DNA of 63,500 nt, counting the filler, from Ministeria vibrans ATCC 50519 (lineage: Eukaryota > Protista > Filasterea): the NCBI GenBank assembly GCA_943704425.1. It is 6 parts of 6 records of this genome, joined end to end, with 100 filler letters (N's around TTAATTAATTAA, not from the genome) between each part and the next. Parts side by side here need not be neighbours in the genome. Positions count along the whole stretch, not along the records: positions 15,865 to 26,250 come from CALSCP010000043.1; 5 more parts are not named here. One strand, 5' to 3'. Under the pieces are notes generated by a model. That model ran no database searches and was not told where the DNA came from. It worked only from the letters and a program-made list of their open reading frames with translations. Shown in pieces: positions 15,864-26,419 of this stretch (positions are counted from its first letter, which is position 1; every line of letters begins with the position of its first letter). Position numbers and translations under genes: made by a program.

Positions 15864-15904
15864 NTTTTTTTTCTCTCTCTCTCTCTGTCTCATTCTTGCA
15901 CATA

Positions 15905-16139
15905 CCGCTGCTTTTGTAAGGGCCTTCTGAGCCTTGAGAAGGAACTTGAGGGTCTTGTCCTGCTTCTGCTGGGCCTTGAGCAGCTGCTTGTCGGTCAGGG
16001 GCGTTCCGTCGTCCGCCGTGCGTGCCACTGCGCCCATGACGATCGTCCCGTCCTCGCCGATCCGCGCCGACTCCTTGGCTAGCAGTTCCTCAAATGCCTG
16101 CTGCGGCGTGGGTCCTGTTGAGGCTCCAGCGTCAGACAT
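15905..16139 (-). CDS. First exon of an unidentified gene (remainder lost in gap)
   Basis: MSDAGAST...QKALTKAA followed by donor GTATGT; GC-rich codon usage like neighbouring genes. Confidence 0.5.
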
Positions 16140-16262
16140 GCTTGAATTTCTCACTTGGAATACTAAAAATGACCTTTTTTCATTTAATCATTTAATACAA
16201 TCATACGACATACTAGTACATCAATCAATTCAAACACAATAAAATTTTCGACGCGAAACAGC

Positions 16263-19200
16263 TCAACTGACACCACTCGAATCAAGGCCAAGATCAATTT
16301 CAACATTGCCAATGGTGCTGCGATCGGGCGCATACGGCTTGAGCACACCCTTGTTGAGGTGCTTGGCCGTCGCTATGTGCCGCGACCACCAAAACTCAGG
16401 CACCTGACACTGACACGCGTCGCAATAGCGCTGCTTGCGTCCCTGCTGCACGGCTGTCGTGGCCGTCGTCGCTGGTCCTTTGGCAATGCTTTCCGGCGAC
16501 CCTTTCGCGCTGTGCTGCTGTGCGAGCAGTTGACCTCGACGTGTCACGGCTCGCGCACTCGGACCAGGTGGACCATAGCGTTGACGTAGGTACATGAAGA
16601 GCGCCCCAAGAGCAAGACTAATAGGAAAGCCGCCAAGTAATAGGTAATTGGTAGTGCTTTCGGAGGCGGGAAAGACGGTGGCGGCAAGTAGTGCCACGAG
16701 ATTCGTGTACACAACGGCCATGAGCATTGCAGCGCGACCAATGTTGACGCGACGGTCGTAGTAGGCAGGATCGACGAGGGAGGCGACGAGCATGAAAACG
16801 GTGACAACAAACAACACGGCTGTGATAGTTTCGCTCGAGATGCGTCCTGTGCCCAGCACGGTGATGGCCACAAGTGCGAGGCGAGCCAAGAGCTGCAGCT
16901 GATTTCCAGTGGTACCAGGACGCGAGAAGAGCCCGCGATGGCGCAGGTCGGGCGCATCAAAAGACCAACGGAACCAAAAAAAGACCGCAACGCGACTGAG
17001 TTGATTGGAGACACGTACGAGACGGAGAGTGAGCACAAGGAAAAGAAGCAGGGCAAGGGCAGCGATGGTGCAGTAGGCAATGTGGTGGTGGGCCCAGCAA
17101 GGGAGCAGGGCAGAAGGGGCGGTGGAGGGATCAAGGCAGTCGCCAAAGACAGCAAGGAGAACGCGGCAGACGGGAATGAAGAAGGCAGATGTGAGGAAAA
17201 AGAGGTAGACGGAAATGAGGGCGTAGAGAGCGCCGCGCACAGACCAGATGTCGTGAGCGTCGAAGACGACGAGGTGAGCGGCGAGAAAGGAGGCAAGGGC
17301 AAGCACGACGGCAGCAACGACGCCCCAGAGCACAGCGTACGGCAGCGAGAAAAACTGCAGCGACGGAAGGATGTTGCGTAGAAAATTGTCGACGTGAAAA
17401 AGAGGGCCAATGACAAAGGGAAAAGAGAGGAGCTGGAGGAAGTCAAACAGGAGGACGGCAAGCGAGGCAAGGGCCATCAATGGTGGCATGCGTAATTCGT
17501 CGAAAACGGCGCGCCGTGTGCCATACACCTGCTTGAGGCGTCCTTTGCGAGCGTCCCATTGGCAAAGCATGCCGTCACGACTGGCCGACAAAAAGCGCCG
17601 AGGAGCGTTGGCCGTGGAGGGTGAGGAGGAAGAGACGGAGGCAATGCAGTTGATGTAGTCTCCGTGTGCGTCGTATTCCCATGCGAGCTCACCCGAGTCT
17701 ACTCGGTGGCACAGCACAGTGGCCGCCTTGCCGCCTGATAAGAGAAACTCGTCACGTGAGTCCACTGCCAACGCACGCACTGTCGACGCGTGCCCGCCAA
17801 ACGACCGTTCCAAAGTGCCCGTCTCCAGGTTGAACATGCGCACAAGGCCGTCACGCGACGCACTGAAGATGCGCTGGGAGTGCTGCGACACAGAGAGTGC
17901 GTTGACGGCGTCCGAGTGGCCCTCGAGAACATGCAAGAGGGCGCCGGTGCGGGCGCACCAGCAGCGCATACCACCCTCGGCGTCGGCGGTGACACAGGCG
18001 ACAGCGAGCGGAGCGGCCACGACAAAGTTGACGGACGCCGTGTGGGCGGCGGGGCAGTTGAAGACGGGCGGAAGAGGAGGCGCGAGGGACTGGTCGACGC
18101 ACCAAAAGAGCACACGGCCGTCCACCGCACCCGCAAACATTCCAAAGAGCGTCACCTGACCGGAGCCGGATGGATCCAGTATGGGCACAGCACACACATT
18201 GTTGATGCCCACCTTAGGGGCACTACTGGGGGTGCTCTTATTGTCGTGTCCGTCGTCGTCGCGCGTACATGTATCAAAGGTCGCGAGTGGATCGAGCGAG
18301 TCGGAAGCAACGTCAATGGCTGTGATCAATCCATCCATAGTCGACGCAAGCACAACGGTACTGGCGAGCACGGAGAGAGCGCTGACTTGGCCGCCCAACT
18401 CGAGGGTACGCACCGGACACGGCTCGCAACCGCGAAGGTCGAGAAACGCCTGCAGGTCCCACAGCTTGACTGTCTTGTCGGAGGACGCCGAGAGCACTGC
18501 AAGTTGCGGCGTGTGAATAATGTGGGCGGACATGACTTGTCGGGTGTGGCCACGCAAGACAGCAATGCAGTTTGCGCTGCGCAACGACCAGATTCGGATG
18601 GTATGGTCGCGTGAGCATGACACGACAAGATCGTCGTCGGCGCTCGCCGAGACTGACCAGACCGTGTCGGTGTGTGCCCAAGCGTCGCGTCGCGGCAAGT
18701 ACTCGGAGGCGTCGCTGGTCTTTTTCATTTCTTCGATGGTGTCGCGAAAGCGGGAGGGACAGCAGCACAACCAGGAGGCGCGCGAGTTGACGGTGTCGTG
18801 CGCTGGGGCCATAGCGGTCTCTAGGGCGACGCGAAACACGTCGGAGACACCCTGACCGCGTAATGCGGAGCAGGACACGTAGCGAACGCCGTGCTGCGCG
18901 GCAAGCCGCTCCGTCTCGGCAGGGTGCACGGCGTGGTCCAGGTCCGCCTTCAAGCCCACCAGGATCCACCGTGAGTTGGGCGCATGGTACGCGATCTCAG
19001 GCAGCCACTTCTCGACGGTGTTTTGAAAGCTTGTGCGACTGTTGAGGGCGAAGCACACGAGGAAGACGTCTGTTTGGGGGTAGGAGAGCGGACGCAACCT
19101 GCAAGACCAAAGTTCAGTGCACCGTCACCTCATCTTGACCGATCTCGCACCTATCGTAATCCTCTTGGCCTGCCGTGTCCCACAGTCCAACGTTGTATGG

Positions 19201-19347
19201 TTTGGCGTCGTGCATGACGTTCGCCGAGTAGTTGTCGAAGACGGTGGGCACGTACTCGCCGGGAAAGGCGTTGGTCGTGTACATGATGAGCAAGCAGGTC
19301 TTCCCCACTGCCCCGTCGCCCACCGCGACGACCTTGACTGACTGCAT
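16263..19347 (-). CDS. Rac/Rho GTPase - WD40 repeats - multi-pass membrane domain - zinc finger fusion protein (~1010 aa, one intron)
   Basis: [30 protein letters not shown]|[12 protein letters not shown] across an intron at ~19099-19150. Multiple GH...WD repeats, about 8 hydrophobic helices and YCDAC...HIATAKH follow in one open frame. Confidence 0.9.
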
Positions 19348-19561
19348 CGCGCCTTATGCTGCAGTACACAACCGGTGGGGCCGTCGTGAAATTTATATGA
19401 GTTTGCAATGTAAGTTTATTGTAGATTGTAAAACTCTTTGTCTTTGAATTTTGTTTGAATCTGAGGTGAAAGTAAAGATTTGATTTTGTGTCGACGTTCT
19501 CATAAGTTATCAGACATAAGTTAATAAGTTTCTTTCTTGTCATTGGTTGGCCTTCGTCAAG

Positions 19562-22217
19562 ATGGATCCGTTTGAGTGCGCTCGCACCGCAGACAACATG
19601 CAACTGATCCGATGGATCGACAAACTGTCTGGCAGCGTCAACGCAGGCGACCTCCACGGCCACACCGTGCTGCATTGGGTAGGCGTGTGTGCGTGTGTAT
19701 GTGTGTACTGACGCGTGTGCGGTGCGTGCGTGCAGGCGGCCAAGGCAGGGCACGCCAGCACTGTTGACGTCTTACTCTCGCGCGGCGCCATGCCGAACAA
19801 GCGCAACGGCGGAGGCGACACTCCCCTCCACAATGCCGTGACCCACAACAAACTCAGTGTTGTCGACAAGGTGCATGGGAATTCATTCGCCCAACACACA
19901 AAGTTCACCTTTCCTCTGTTTCTCTGTGTTTAGCTGATCTTGGCACACGCCGATGTAAACGCAGCCAACGAGCACGGGAACACGCCGTTGCACTATGCAT
20001 TGTTTTGGCGATACACGGATGTGGTTGACAGACTGATCAAAGGAGGCGCACACGTAAGACAAAGACACACACGCAACGCTATACGAACGCAGTATAATCC
20101 ATACATATATGCAGACACTCACACAACGATATATATATGCACACACGCAACACTGTATATACTATACAGACACACATAACACTATACACACACAGACACA
20201 CACACACGCACACACACACACACACAGAGAGAGAGACACTTTGTTGTTAACGCTTGAATCTGTAGCCGTTGATTTCAAATAAGTATGGGAGAACACCACT
20301 GGATGGGGTGAACGAAGCGGAAAAGGCGCGTATTTTGAAGTTGGCGGAAGCGAAGAAGGGCCGACCGATGAAAAAGAAGTCGTATGTGACGCTCAAGGTG
20401 GAGGAGGATGAGCGAGCGTCGCTCACTCTCGCGCCGGATCTGTCGACGCCCATTGTGGTAAGTGTCAGTGGGTTCCAGACGAAGTAGTGATGTCATATTG
20501 CGCGATGTCCTTGTCTTTTTACATATGGTAGGTACCGTTCAATTTTTTGACGATGGGGGGACTGAGCGAGACCATCAGCGATGGGGAGGTGTTTGATGCA
20601 GTGTGGAGTGGAAAGGGGGCGTGGACGGGTGCTAAGGTGAAGTTGTGTGGATGTTGGTGGTGGCAGCGGTAGTGATGATGAGACTGAGTGCTGATGTGCG
20701 CTGTGGCGTGTAGGTGTCGGTGAAGCAGTTTCTCAAGGTGGACTGGAGCGGGGATGAGGTGGCGCGCTTCACCGAGTATGCGACAGAGCTGCGGGCGACA
20801 GTTAAATGCGACTACATCCGGACAATCCTGGCCATCAGCAACAGTGTCCCTCATCTATGCGTCATTTCCAACCGCAGTGATCAAAACCTGCGCACGGCCC
20901 TGCGCGATCCTACCCGTCTTCTCGACGAGAAGAGCCAGGTATAAGAAAGAGAGAAGAAGAGACGGACCGTGACCGCGGGACGGACAGAGAGATGTACCTT
21001 GCCTTTTTTTTTGTCTTGCTTGTTTATATATCTTGTATCTTGTGATTAATTTGGTGTCTTTGCTCTTTTTATTTGCCTCTTCTTTCGTCTGCCTTTATTT
21101 TGGTTTATCCCTTTTCATTTTGATGTTTGACTCTGGCCTTCCCATTTACTCACTACATATCTGCTCCTTCTCTTTTTGTGTGTTTGTGCGGTACCTCAGT
21201 TGCGCTATGCGATTCACGTCGCGCGGGGCATCACGTGGCTGCATGAGCTGTCTCGCTCTCTCTCGCCTCTCCTCCACATTTCGACCCTCACGATTAAGGT
21301 CGGACAAGGGGACCGTCCTCAGATCTCCGCCGATTCTTTTCAATACCCGCATGAGTTTGGCAAGTTTGATCGTGTTTTTCATCCTGAGTTTGCTGCTCCT
21401 GAAGGTACACCCATTTGTTTTTTGTCGAGTATTATGCTTCTGTTCATCGTATTTTATTATTTGTATCACATCATTCATGACGCCCAACTTTTGTTGAAAA
21501 TATGTTTTTTTTTTCTTCGAGTGTACTTTATCATTAATTTTTATTCTTTCTTCCTCTGTCGCTATCACCTTTTTTTCTATTATCACTTTGTTCTTTCTCC
21601 CTCCCTCTTCTCTCTCTCTCTATTTCTTTGTTTCTCTTTGTCTGTCCCTCTGTCTATCTGTTTGTCTTATCTTTTTTATGTGTACGTGCTCGGTTTATCA
21701 CACTTTTTTTTTGTGTTTAGTGCTGATGAACAAGGAAGGATCGTATCCAGCGAAACCCGTCGACGTGTTTTCGTTTGCAATGGTATTCCTTGAGATTGTG
21801 ACGCGCAAGGCGCCGTGGGAGGCACCCTTCACGCCCTTGAGCCTTGGCATGGCCATTGCCATGGACGACGCTCGCCCGCCCATTCCCGACTACATTCGCA
21901 AACCCTTCCGTCAACTCGTGGCTGTCACGTGGGTTCGTGACTCCCGCAAGCGCCCCCCCATGGTCCGCGTTCTCGCGACCCTCGAGAAGATGCGCAAGGT
22001 CATGTTCAAGGACCCAACGACCGATAGTCCCAACGCCAGTGCTGCGTCTGTCGCCGTGTCCATGCCCAGTGCATCTCCTGCCGCCTCCCGCCCCAATCTC
22101 GCCAAGGATGCCACTCAAAACAGTTTTGCTTCGCTCAGTCTCGATCCCGAACTCGACGTTGATTTTGATGCTGCCGACGACGAAGAACTCTCCGACTTTC
22201 GTGCACAGTTTGAGTGA
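19562..22217 (+). CDS. ILK: Integrin-linked kinase-like protein (ankyrin repeats plus pseudokinase), multi-exon
   Basis: NAGDLHGHTVLHW, GDTPLH, ADVNAANEHGNTPLHYALFW and ISNKYG parallel animal ILK. The kinase-fold part lacks HRD and DFG but keeps APE and DVFSFA. Confidence 0.85.
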
Positions 22218-22348
22218 AAAGACAAGCAATTAATAATTAATGTCGAAAAAGGACACAAAAAGAACATTTGTGATGAAAGTGACCAACAAAGATATACTAA
22301 TACGAAAGTAAACTCATAAAATTAATTACAAGAAAATAAATCGAAAAT

Positions 22349-22464
22349 ATAATAATAATAATACTAATAATAATACTAATACTAATAATAATAATAATAC
22401 AATAATAATAATAATACAATAATGATAATAATAATAATTATTATTATTATTATTATTATTATTA
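22349..22464. repeat. (TAA)n/(TTA)n microsatellite in inverted arrangement
   Basis: A degenerate AAT run switches to an ATT run at ~22437. Confidence 0.9.
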
Positions 22465-22493
22465 AATGGGTTGTATTCTTCTTCTTCTTATTA

Positions 22494-22822
22494 AAGGACG
22501 GCGAGCTCGTGAAGGCAGCGGAGAGTCTGTCCACAAACGAGTGGCGAGCGCGTCTCCAAGACACGCCCAGCCTCAGCGGACCTACGAGCGCGTCGCCACT
22601 CAAAGACAGGAGGTACAACCCACTGAGCACATCCAAGTACCTGAGCAAGATGCCGAAGAGATCGGGGCAAGTGCTGCTACTGCTGCGCTGCAACGCACTC
22701 ATCACGGGCACCACCTGCATCAGCTGGGGCATGGCGGGCCCAGCCTTTGCGCGCTTCAACATCCCCGCCGGCGCGTCGGTCGACACGTTCCGGTGTCGGG
22801 CGTGCGCAGCCATCCCACAGCC

Positions 22823-22862
<40 letters not shown>

Positions 22863-23613
22863 CTGCAACAACCACCGCTGGAGAGCCCGGAACACTTCCT
22901 GCTCCACTGTGCTCACCCAGCGGTGTACCGACACCGACACGACTCACTGGTCGGCAAGACCCTTGCCGAGGCATTGCGCGCGACCAATGACACGCACTAT
23001 GAAGCACTTCATCCCCTGGGGGAGATGTACAAATGCTTCATCGTCGCCGTCAACGCCACCCATTGACTCACCCTTCCGAACCCCTCGTCCCNNNNNNCGA
23101 CACGCACTATGAAGCACTTCATCCCCTGGGGGAGATGTACAAATGCTTCATCGTCGCCGTCAACGCCACCCATTGACTCACCCTTCCGAACCCCTCGTCC
23201 CCCCACCCACCCATCCATATATCTATCCTCATAATCTAACACACAGTCACGACAACAAGCACACCAGCCGCCCTACAGCCGACCCGCCCCGCCTGTGTAC
23301 CACGGGAGCGCCCCGCAGCCACCTGGACTTGCCGCCGCCGACCACCGATCCGATTGCCTCAACCACGACTTCGACTTTACACTCCTTGCCGACAGACACC
23401 TTCATGGTGTCAGAGCCCTAAGCCTCCTCTGGGGGTATGGCGTACCATTGCGATTGCCTCACTGGATAGCGTCGACACAGCACTATGACCTGCCACTGTT
23501 CTCCCATGTTACCTCTAGAGTTTCGGTCGAGTTTGCAAGGCGGTCTGGCTGTGTCTTCGCGTGGTGACTGTATCATTAATAAATGGGTTGTATTCTTCTT
23601 CTTCTTCTTCTTC
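22494..23613 (+). mobile_element. 5'-truncated non-LTR retrotransposon (ORF2 C-terminus plus 3' UTR, (TTC)n tail)
   Basis: LLLLRC...CRAC...ESPEHFLLHC is the LINE ORF2 C-terminal zinc-knuckle. The element ends in AATAAA-TGGGTTGTA(TTC)n and is embedded in (TTA)n. Confidence 0.7.
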
Positions 23614-23707
23614 TTATTATTATTAATTTCTTATTATGAGAGAACAATAACAATTGTGATTACTCCAATACTCCTCCACTTACATGACAATAATTTTACT
23701 TTAATCG

Positions 23708-24688
23708 ATGTCTCTTCGCGCCGCTGCCATTGCCTTGGTGGCCGCGCTGCATTTCACAATGGCAGAACCTCAATTGGCAACGCTTGGGTATCTTCCCGAG
23801 TGGCGCTACGGGGGCGTCGACTTCGAGGAGCTGTGCGAGAATCTGTCGCACTTGATATTCTTTTCAATCGAAATGGACGAAACGGGCGCGTTGACTGCGA
23901 TGGATCGCTTCCCCAACGAGGCCCAATTAGACAGGGCGCGTGCTGCTGCGTCGCGCACCGGAACAAAGCTTTTGGTTTCGTTTGGGGGCAACTCACGCAC
24001 CGGCGGATTCCCAGCCATGGCGGCGCACAGGGACACACGGCGCACCTTCATTCACAACTGCATCGGGCTCCTTTCGCGCCACCAGCTGCACGGCATTGAC
24101 TTGAACTGGGAGTACCCGCGCACCGAGGCCGACTGGCGCAACCTGGTGCTGCTGCTGGTGGAGCTTCGCGAGGCGTTGGACGCACTAGGCGCTGCTGTGC
24201 TCACCATGGCGTATTACCCCGATCGTCGTCAGGAGGCGATTTTGGCTCAGAGCGCTGCGTTTGCCAGTGTTGATTATGTGATGAGCATGTGCTATGACCA
24301 GCGTGGCCAACACTCCACCTGGGAGTTTGCTGTGCGGGCGGTACAGCAGGCGCGTGACGCTGGCATTCCCGACTCAAAACATGCCCTGGGTGTGCCATTC
24401 TACGCACGAAATGTGCGCACGGGTGATTGGAAGACATACGAAGAGATTGTCAAGGAGCTAGGTGGGGATGTGGCAGTGCGCACCAGCGACGACACGTACG
24501 GGGAGTTCTTTTTCAATGGCGTCGATATGATCCGACGCAAGACGCAACTGGCACTTGACTCCTCGCTAGGCGGGCTGATGATCTGGGAAGTGGGTCAGGA
24601 CACACACCCTCGCACTAGCTCCGTGTCACTGTTGCGCGCCATACAGACTGTTCTTCACGCTGGCGTCGGCTCAAAGGACGATTTATGA
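23708..24688 (+). CDS. Secreted glycoside hydrolase family 18 (chitinase-like), intronless
   Basis: Signal peptide; GYLPEW, LLVSFGG, HGIDLNWEYP, MCYD, LGVPFYAR, LGGLMIWEVGQD. Confidence 0.9.
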   Translation: MSLRAAAIALVAALHFTMAEPQLATLGYLPEWRYGGVDFEELCENLSHLIFFSIEMDETGALTAMDRFPNEAQLDRARAAASRTGTKLLVSFGGNSRTGGFPAMAAHRDTRRTFIHNCIGLLSRHQLHGIDLNWEYPRTEADWRNLVLLLVELREALDALGAAVLTMAYYPDRRQEAILAQSAAFASVDYVMSMCYDQRGQHSTWEFAVRAVQQARDAGIPDSKHALGVPFYARNVRTGDWKTYEEIVKELGGDVAVRTSDDTYGEFFFNGVDMIRRKTQLALDSSLGGLMIWEVGQDTHPRTSSVSLLRAIQTVLHAGVGSKDDL

Positions 24689-24852
24689 TGACGATGGGTT
24701 TTAATAATTCTATACTAATCTTAATAATTATTAATAATAATTATTATTATTTTAATAATTATTATTATTGTCAATAGTATTATTGGTAGCATGTGTGTCT
24801 ATATTAATAATTATTATTGTAATTACACTTCTATTATACATGGGTCCGAATC

Positions 24853-26046
24853 TCACATCCCTGGTTTAAAGTATATGTCAATGTTTTTGCGGTCAGAATA
24901 CATCTGAGCAGATGCAATAGCACGGCAGAGAAGCGTCCAAGAGCGACTGGGAAGAGCCGCACACAAAGGCGCCACTGCTGTTGGATAGTATTTGCTAGAG
25001 CGGAACATCCATCCATCGACTGCGGCGTACACGGCGACCGGATCGTGAGTGAGGCGGCGGACTGCGTCAAACCACTCGACGAAGGCATGCGGGTCGAGAC
25101 GCATCGTGAGCGACACCCGCTGAGTGTTGGTGGCACCAAGCAGTGCACCAAGACCGTAGAGACAGCCATAGCGCTGGTGGGGCTGTGTAAGAGTGATACA
25201 CAGATAGGACGAACGCGAATAGTGGCCATTGGGTGTGAGGCACACGCTCGCAGGGCAGTCGCGAGCAAACCGCCATGCGTACTGAAAACACGCCGCTGGA
25301 ATAACACTCTCAAGACACGGCTGCCATTGCGTGGTGGGTCCTGCCTGGTAGTTCGTTGCCGAGAGCAAATGCTGCATGTAGACACCGCCCGCACAATAAA
25401 ACTGTTTGTGTCGATTTCCCATTCGCCAGCAGGCGATCAGTGCATCGTCGGATGTCATCGAAAGCATAGTATAGATATGTCCGACAGCATGGGCACACTC
25501 GGTGATAGAGAAAATCGTTGAGGCGACGCGACAGATCGCTTCAATGGGGGTGTCGAAGGCAGCGAGCTGAGTGCCGTTGAGCCGTTGCAACGCGTTCACT
25601 TCATTGACCGCCATGTGAACGACAATGCCGTCGTAGGTCAACAGCAGACCCTCGACAATGCCGTGAAAGCAGCCGGCTCCACACAGCGTGCCGCAAGTGA
25701 CGATGAGCGCGGCAGCCTCGTCGCTCACCGTCGTCGTCGAAGGGAACGGAGGATCCCTTAAAAGACGGGTTGCGGCGACGCCAACAACGTGCGATGCGGC
25801 ATGGCAAGACGTCGGCTTGGTATCCAGCGACACTATTACGTTGTGGAGGCTGTATTCTTGCAGGTAGGGCATCATTTCGTCCACCTAAAGTACAAGCGTC
25901 ATACCAATTCATCATTGGTGACACAATCAGTGTTTCTTTCGTGCCGTCATATGAGCCACATTTTCAGGACTTAGGCTATCCAACGGTGGAAGTTGATCGC
26001 TTAGAGCGCTGCCAACTAGCAGGAGTAGCAGCGAGGTAACAAGCAT
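24853..26046 (-). CDS. Secreted Cys/His-repeat protein of unknown function (5' structure unresolved)
   Basis: Repeats CHAASHVVG, CGAGCFHGIVE, CAHAVGH, CAGGVYM, GCLYGLG. An upstream signal-peptide-like MLVTSLLLLLVGSALS lies in a different frame. Confidence 0.65.
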
Positions 26047-26419
26047 GAAAGTGATGAAACATTTGATTCGATAATTGATTTAAATGATTACTGACCATAA
26101 GGAATGATATAAAAGTGCACTGGTAAGTACATTCCTACGTGTCTGCCTGACGCTGCGGTCGCTTCTTGGATCCTTGAAAGAGGCGTTGATTGAGCATGTC
26201 CCATTCCGGATTGATCACGACGGCATCAATGGTCAGCGCCTGAGTGGGCCNNNNNNNNNNNNNNNNNNNNNNNNNNNNNNNNNNNNNNNNNNNNTTAATT
26301 AATTAANNNNNNNNNNNNNNNNNNNNNNNNNNNNNNNNNNNNNNNNNNNNCTCTCTCTCTATCACTTTGTTTCTTTCTCCTCTATCTCTCTCTGTGTTTC
26401 ACATTCAATGTGCTAGCAC

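Follow-up and report, generated by a model that had tools for sequence, protein, structure and literature searches.

What would a Rac-like GTPase do at the head of a polypeptide that appears to cross a membrane eight times, and is such a protein real? Both questions are raised by a minus-strand gene, here called the Rac-fusion gene, at positions 16263–19347 of a 63,500-nucleotide (nt) stretch of DNA from the filasterean Ministeria vibrans ATCC 50519 (the window; GenBank assembly GCA_943704425.1), of which we analysed the part at 15865–26250. Rho GTPases are small proteins with a lipid anchor; guanine-nucleotide exchange factors (GEFs), GTPase-activating proteins (GAPs) and RhoGDI control their movement on and off the membrane. 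An earlier note, drawn up from the DNA sequence, had described here a Rac-like G domain, several WD40 repeats, about eight transmembrane (TM) helices and a C-terminal zinc finger in a single frame, and had proposed a receptor-like protein with its own GTPase switch and a G-beta-like scaffold. We find that the Rac-fusion gene is real and expressed, and that it encodes a polytopic membrane protein. By homology it belongs to a small, conserved and apparently undescribed family whose members run, in order, from a Rac/Cdc42-type G domain through a Cys-rich linker, a 7-bladed WD40 propeller and an 8-TM domain to a C2H2 finger.

The gene has two exons and a product of about 1010 amino acids (aa):

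19347–19151, minus strand: exon 1, coding; ATG at 19347, 65 codons plus 2 nt of codon 66
19150–19099, minus strand: intron of 52 nt, GT..AG, within codon 66; skipped in RNA contigs, kept in a DNA contig
19098–16263, minus strand: exon 2, coding; 944 codons plus the TGA stop at 16263–16265
19348–19374, minus strand: 5' untranslated region up to the limit of the RNA contigs, which end at 19374 (run X6) and 19372 (run X7)
16262–16162, minus strand: 3' untranslated region up to the limit of the RNA contigs, which start at 16162 and 16164

The last two bases of exon 1 (AG, 19152–19151) and the single G at 19098 make up an AGG (Arg) codon, and the exon–exon junction encodes a canonical Rho switch II. 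The 944-codon open frame starts at 19097, its first codon being an internal TTG (Leu); judged by homology along its whole length, it is no chance open reading frame (ORF). Our analysis proceeded exon by exon, with exon-2 residue n equal to full-length residue n+66, and the total of about 1010 aa is derived in this way.

Transcription of the whole frame is documented by two contigs of 3161 and 3157 nt, one each in runs X6 and X7, which come from the same study and carry another organism's label. They align to 16162–19096 and 19149–19374 (or 19372) with 0 mismatches, skipping 52 nt that read GT..AG on the gene strand, and cover the entire ORF from 27 nt before the ATG to about 101 nt past the stop codon. 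The RNA label of the runs is a guess; the contigs nevertheless derive from spliced RNA, because precisely the GT..AG intron is missing from them. No spliced leader was found on these contigs, a point against a euglenozoan origin. Run X20, from another study, adds a 213-nt contig in the TM region that is identical to the window, together with a spliced contig of a neighbouring gene. An unspliced contig from run X2, a separate 2022 study of unrecorded kind, spans 15900–20169 and runs collinear with the window, intron included; its single difference from the window, at 19714, lies outside the Rac-fusion gene. The adjacent genes are carried on other RNA contigs, whose listed mean depth is 10–20 times that of the Rac-fusion gene.

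The single frame after one short intron, as the earlier note had it, is thus seen removed of exactly that intron in RNA contigs of two runs, and the gene yields one continuous transcript. Nor do transcripts end after the GTPase, or the assembly break within 18600–18800, two outcomes that the note had named as fatal: the X6 and X7 contigs run through the entire ORF, and the independent DNA contig is collinear. That the gene is an artefact, be it a misassembly, a read-through product of adjacent genes or a pseudogene in decay, is scarcely credible given spliced contigs that lack exactly the intron and extend past the ORF by 27 nt and 101 nt. Collinearity of the independent DNA contig, recurrence of the same domain order in three other eukaryotes, and the intactness of all catalytic motifs and family-invariant residues (see below) also argue against it.

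The head of the protein is a G domain followed by a cluster of cysteines:

19347–19151, minus strand: N-terminal part of the G domain (residues 1–65), with P-loop GDGAVGKT, switch I with its Thr35 equivalent, and DTAGQ
19097–18798, minus strand: C-terminal part of the G domain, matched by Pfam Ras, with G4 LKAD and G5 CSAL; the Rho insert (~14 aa) is missing
18773–18756, minus strand: Cys cluster WLCCCP, adjoining the G domain in the position of a CaaX tail

Pfam Ras matches exon 1 over profile positions 1–62 (E 7e-21) and the first 94 aa of exon 2 over positions 64–159 (E 8e-17), and because these matches are complementary the two exons complete one G domain. The best PDB match for exon 1 was human Rac1, with all 65 residues aligned to Rac1 1–65 (E 6e-35, 120.8 bits, ~85% identity as counted from the alignment). 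For exon 2 it was Cdc42 (E 1.5e-23, 86 bits), exon-2 residues 1–101 aligning with Cdc42/Rac 67–182. Nucleotide-binding motifs G1–G5 are intact: LKAD occupies the position of Rac1 TKLD (Rac1 115–118) and keeps the Lys and Asp that are conserved in G4, and CSAL stands at G5. The Rac-like G domain of the earlier note, with its P-loop and switches I and II, is borne out by these matches; it is Rac/Cdc42-derived and probably competent in catalysis.

Read from its sequence, however, this G domain departs from classical Rho proteins in two hallmarks, having neither the insert nor a box for prenylation. The insert helix between G4 and G5 is missing, a gap of ~14 residues falling exactly there in the Cdc42 alignment; this deletion goes beyond what the earlier note had reported. 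Nor is there a CaaX box: after the G domain come WLCCCP and ~830 more residues, and the protein terminates in ...SSGVS. The Cys cluster is a possible S-acylation site, and Cys-rich linkers occupy the matching position in homologues from Pelomyxa (CCLC) and from an environmental contig, L001 (CCSWCCRCCRCCC). Prenylation is ancestral for Rho proteins, and in microsporidia the CaaX box has been replaced by Cys residues predicted to be palmitoylated (PMC13393502, a 2026 survey of microsporidian small GTPases). These features raise one alternative for the whole protein, namely that the TM domain merely replaces the prenyl anchor of an otherwise ordinary Rac acting on actin at one membrane. The CaaX box is gone with the Cys cluster and TM segments in its place, switches I and II are nearly identical to those of Rac1, and changes in the mode of attachment are documented in the Rho family (PMC13393502). 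We return to this alternative once the remaining domains have been described.

Downstream of the linker lies a propeller:

18662–17523, minus strand: 7-bladed WD40 beta-propeller, from Pfam WD40, an AlphaFold model and Foldseek
18401–18213, minus strand: insertion of ~60 aa between blades 2 and 3, with a predicted local distance difference test score (pLDDT) below 50 at model residues 134–196

Pfam WD40 matches exon 2 at E 5e-29 (100 bits against a cut-off of 27), and the AlphaFold model of exon-2 residues 100–540 (pLDDT 68.8; predicted template-modelling score, pTM, 0.72) has 28 strands, equal to seven blades. The several WD40 repeats noted earlier are accounted for in this way. Foldseek placed the propeller among generic 7-bladed WD40 proteins (WDR61, LIS1, WDR5 and UAF1; E ~1e-19, TM-score up to 0.80). 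The insertion between blades 2 and 3 coincides with a gap in the alignment of homologues and, as modelled, is probably disordered. A specific G-beta identity found no support: PF25391 (WD40_Gbeta) scored 51 bits against a cut-off of 150, and the top Foldseek rows contain no G-beta. The scaffold is therefore a generic 7-bladed WD40 propeller, and the earlier description of it as G-beta-like is unsupported.

The propeller leads into the membrane domain:

17477–16575, minus strand: 8-helix membrane domain, predicted N-in/C-in, with no Pfam family; from a hydropathy scan and AlphaFold
17477–17412, minus strand: TM1
17339–17265, minus strand: TM2
17240–17133, minus strand: TM3 (kinked)
17090–17013, minus strand: TM4
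16910–16851, minus strand: TM5
16835–16773, minus strand: TM6
16754–16677, minus strand: TM7
16655–16575, minus strand: TM8
17138–17082, minus strand: predicted extracytosolic loop 3–4, with a Cys pair (97% and 100% of members), Trp and His (89%)
17012–16911, minus strand: predicted cytosolic loop 4–5, after the invariant Arg that ends TM4, with conserved Trp (83%), Asp (100%) and Ser (97%), and five Arg

Eight hydrophobic helices appear both in the hydropathy scan and in an AlphaFold model of the membrane part built on a 36-sequence alignment, in which they are long and well predicted (pLDDT 85.2, pTM 0.80). This agrees with the roughly eight helices of the earlier note, whose FDFLQL and C...PCW..HH motifs are present and lie among the conserved positions of the family. 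Lys and Arg are absent from the proposed outside loops 3–4 and 7–8 and number one each in loops 1–2 and 5–6; on the cytosolic side there are five in loop 4–5 and four in each of the N- and C-terminal flanks. This charge distribution fits an N-in/C-in topology, which would place the GTPase, propeller and finger all in the cytosol. The Cys pair of loop 3–4 would then lie outside, where a disulfide is possible. The structure and topology predictions that the note had called for are thereby supplied.

The membrane domain has no recognisable relative in the collections we searched. Pfam gave no match for exon-2 residues 540–944 even at E 10; the best Foldseek hit in PDB had E 0.12, with no relative among the hits. 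VIA-align against 48,161 chains peaked at Z 8.3 with spectrin-type three-helix bundles, which are generic, and a profile of the membrane-domain alignment against PDB sequences returned noise only (SLC19A1 at E 0.018). Two candidates were considered and rejected. A G-protein-coupled receptor (GPCR), or seven-TM, identity is at odds with eight helices and a cytosolic N-terminus, and the GPCR rows in Foldseek had E 0.1–1 and TM-scores of at most 0.2. The TRP-like channel family PF06011 surfaced as a language-model lead only (scores 0.79–0.91, a quarter of the clusters carrying PF06011) and was unconfirmed by HMMER; it was absent among the 25 families matched by most members in hmmscan runs on 36 and 23 members at E up to 1 and 10.

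The chain ends in a small finger:

16433–16353, minus strand: C2H2-type zinc finger Cx2Cx11Hx5H, ligand span 16424–16359, from a pattern match and AlphaFold

In the model of the membrane part, TM8 is followed by a cytosolic helix and then by a beta-hairpin and helix at Cx2Cx11Hx5H. The predicted fold is beta-beta-alpha (strands 350–353 and 358–361, helix 362–369 in model residues; pLDDT ~78–80), and the ligands are conserved in five homologues. No curated Pfam zinc-finger profile matched the last 125 aa, even at E 10. The CxxC...HxxxxxH finger seen earlier is thus located at 16359–16424.

Is this architecture confined to one genome? A HMMER scan with the TM part across 1.84 billion cluster representatives (threshold E <= 1e-3) returned 41 proteins, the best ~30% identical. 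A word-indexed homologue search proved insensitive, with 0 matches for the TM region and two environmental proteins for a TM-only alignment, and a comparison of the window protein with metagenome contigs found no related locus. Homologues with informative architectures are:

Pelomyxa schiedti KAH3745933.1, 'Rac1 protein' (P0008), 1010 aa: Ras 5–162, WD40 192–519, TM domain 531–922
Diphylleia rotans transcripts P0002/P0046: Ras 5–161, WD40 204–527, TM 551–859
Diphylleia rotans paralogue P0013/P0049: RCC1 repeats (PF00415, E ~1e-59), WD40, TM; no zinc finger
P0012: WD40 and TM
P0037: two propeller regions and TM

P0041 likewise has the WD40 and 8-TM core without a Rac head. On environmental contig L001, a Ras ORF (L001:1207–1653) that is without the Rho insert and then runs into a Cys-rich stretch stands directly upstream of a WD40–TM–finger ORF (P0005), a fourth instance of the four-part order. 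In a full-length alignment the homologues are collinear from the G domain through the finger. Further fragments of and matches to the TM domain come from Syssomonas multiformis, a cercozoan metagenome-assembled genome, Symbiodinium sp. KB8 and many marine and environmental contigs. The full architecture is thus seen in Amoebozoa, CRuMs and the window's organism, and the TM domain also in Holozoa, Rhizaria and dinoflagellate-like sequences. The zinc finger is limited to Rac-headed members (the window protein, P0008, P0046/P0003, P0005 and fragment P0001) and is absent elsewhere.

Across 36 members, several TM-domain positions are near-invariant, and the window protein retains every one: the Pro of TM3 (100%), both cysteines of the pair (97% and 100%), the His (89%), the Arg that ends TM4 (100%), the Asp (100%) and Ser (97%) of loop 4–5, and the Asn with which TM7 begins (93%). 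A maximum-likelihood tree of the TM domain has two clades (95/96), with all Rac-headed members in one. The search for Ras+WD40+TM architectures suggested in the earlier note therefore finds them in Pelomyxa, Diphylleia and an environmental contig. The note's impression that the architecture falls outside described families also stands: there is no match to RhoBTB, Miro or Roco, and a Rho–WD40–TM family is undescribed in the full-text literature searched, although most subscription literature lies outside that set and the absence is no proof. The Pelomyxa homologue, which the note had not mentioned, was already in GenBank; because it is called only 'Rac1 protein' there, such fusions are invisible in standard annotation.

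These comparisons bear directly on the anchor-only alternative. Anchoring takes one helix, not eight in which Cys, His, Arg, Asp, Ser and Asn positions stay invariant across supergroups; the 8-TM domain also occurs with non-GTPase heads, and the propeller and finger are conserved alongside it. We consider it quite improbable that the membrane domain serves as an anchor and nothing more.

The same comparisons open a second alternative, a GTPase-gated module in which the WD40 and 8-TM core is a channel, transporter or membrane enzyme, perhaps of the endomembrane, that forms the output, with the nucleotide state of Rac as input. The core is found without a Rac head in P0012, P0013, P0037 and P0041 and so would be able to function alone. 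The conserved Arg, Asp, Ser and Asn lie on the predicted cytosolic face, with the His and Cys pair opposite, and could form a gate or an active site; the weak language-model lead to PF06011 clusters (0.79–0.91) points the same way. Against this, neither PF06011 nor any other TM family is among the families listed by HMMER for the members, no channel or transporter fold was matched, and the RCC1-like head of the paralogue suits an output module more than a pore regulator. We regard a gated module as a serious contender but, on balance, an unlikely one.

The reading we tentatively favour, at somewhat less than an even chance, is the reverse coupling: a membrane-resident Rho-type switch that takes the 8-TM domain as its input. 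It is favoured because the WD40 and 8-TM core is constant and the heads vary between Rac and an RCC1-like, GEF-type module, both of which are GTPase-signalling outputs. The 8-TM domain would act as a sensor, read through its conserved cytosolic face and the propeller, and the G domain would be the output. Held by the TM domain, and perhaps also by S-acylation of the Cys cluster, the G domain would be a Rho-type switch unable to leave the membrane and would signal at a fixed site. Extraction of the RhoGDI type would be inapplicable, because there is no prenyl group to extract. The receptor-like proposal of the earlier note remains a plausible inference.

Several points weigh against this sensor-to-switch reading. 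The direction of coupling is argued from domain shuffling alone, and the function of every family member is inferred. With no known fold relative for the 8-TM domain, 'sensor' is a guess. The transcript evidence consists of assembled contigs rather than raw or long reads. The clade of the Rac-headed members is unresolved inside the TM-domain tree. The history of the Rac head is a further difficulty: against the 120.8 bits that its exon-1 part scores with human Rac1, the other fused G domains give 100–113 bits, and against the 86 bits of its exon-2 part with human Cdc42 they give 49–67 bits. A single origin of the Rac head is thus unproven, because the window's G domain scores higher against the human proteins than against its supposed siblings.

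At G4 the other fused G domains read NKLD, as in Pelomyxa and Diphylleia, or MKSD, and they have lost one residue ahead of a conserved KW; the window protein shares neither feature. The Rho insert is missing alike in the window protein, P0008, P0002 and L001. Either the window's lineage may have kept a more ancestral, slower-evolving head, or gene conversion with, or re-capture from, a canonical Rac may have renewed it.

A bolder extension of the sensor-to-switch reading, which we think rather unlikely, is that the family represents an ancient class of surface or endomembrane receptor. An 8-TM sensor would carry its own Rho-type G protein and propeller on one chain, possibly since before the split of Amorphea, CRuMs and SAR, and the finger would be the intramolecular partner of the switch. 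If the receptor reading were true, the protein would be a one-chain analogue of a GPCR plus its G protein, with paralogues that carry a GEF-like RCC1 head. A switch fused to a polytopic membrane domain would be a different, RhoGDI-independent way to localise Rho signalling. The family also defines a new 8-TM domain, with neither a Pfam family nor a relative of solved structure, and its scatter over distant protists makes it a new, testable element in the evolution of small-GTPase signalling.

How does the protein compare with known systems? Shared with Rac1 and Cdc42 are the P-loop, switch I and DTAGQ, as well as Lys and Asp at G4 and SAL at G5. Those proteins, however, are of ~190 aa, prenylated and equipped with the insert, whereas the window protein is of ~1010 aa, is without both Rho insert and CaaX, and has its G domain in one covalent chain with a propeller and a multi-pass membrane domain. 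Parallels to it are the Pelomyxa KAH3745933.1 and Diphylleia P0002/P0046 proteins, uncharacterised database entries with the same order (Ras, WD40, 8-TM, zinc finger), shared TM motifs and 29–32% overall identity to it. A propeller held at the membrane is also found in Sec12 and SCAP. That of Sec12 is a GEF for the small GTPase Sar1, on a protein that has a single TM helix and carries no GTPase itself; SCAP combines eight TM helices and a WD40 domain, but with the TM domain first and a sterol-sensing domain, which Pfam and HMMER did not detect in the window's membrane part or in family members. Roco/LRRK proteins (ROC–COR–kinase–WD40) likewise combine a Ras-superfamily G domain and WD40 repeats in one polypeptide, and the Pfam Roc model also matches exon 1; the window protein differs in having neither COR nor kinase, in a G domain that is Rac/Cdc42-like rather than ROC, and in being membrane-integral. 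Miro and RhoBTB are likewise large fusions of a Rho-related G domain with other modules. The best 25 of 38 Pfam matches for exon 2 are all Ras or WD40/propeller models, with no EF hands, second GTPase domain, BTB or COR among them or among the matches for exon 1. Miro is the known TM-anchored Rho relative, with a C-terminal TM segment (PMC13393502), a tail anchor as against the eight TM helices of the window protein.

The surrounding DNA holds several other genes. A divergent neighbour on the plus strand, at 19535–20053 and beyond, starts ~160 nt away from the Rac-fusion transcript's 5' end, and its listed contig depth is 10–20 times that of the Rac-fusion gene. RNA contigs place its introns at 19678–19734 (57 nt) and 19869–19931 (63 nt, GT..AG); it continues past 20053, with an exon beyond 20300. 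An ORF at 21588–22217 (plus strand) encodes the C-terminal lobe of a Tyr/Ser-Thr-type kinase (PF07714 positions 185–257, E 4e-4, below cut-off) and may be a late exon of that neighbour. On the other side, 15865–16154 (minus strand) holds the 3' portion of a further gene, truncated where the analysed part begins and represented by a 3421-nt RNA contig of high listed depth, with no Pfam match; a 343-aa ORF at 24853–25884 (minus strand) also has no Pfam match. Repeats in intergenic or uncertain regions comprise an AT-rich trinucleotide repeat at 22422–22470 that reads poly-Ile and a CAG/CAA-type repeat at ~22850–22900 that reads poly-Gln, and a scaffold gap of 6 N lies at 23092–23097. The same DNA also occurs in algae and seawater metagenomes, and small shares of it in runs labelled as other organisms; its source is probably a marine protist that accompanies algal cultures. 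At 23708–24688 (plus strand) is a complete 326-aa ORF of glycoside hydrolase family 18 (GH18; chitinase-like, PF00704 E 3e-36) with a hydrophobic N-terminus, whose best relatives are proteins of Flectonema neradi (48% identity), an environmental sample (46%) and Diplonema papillatum (43%).

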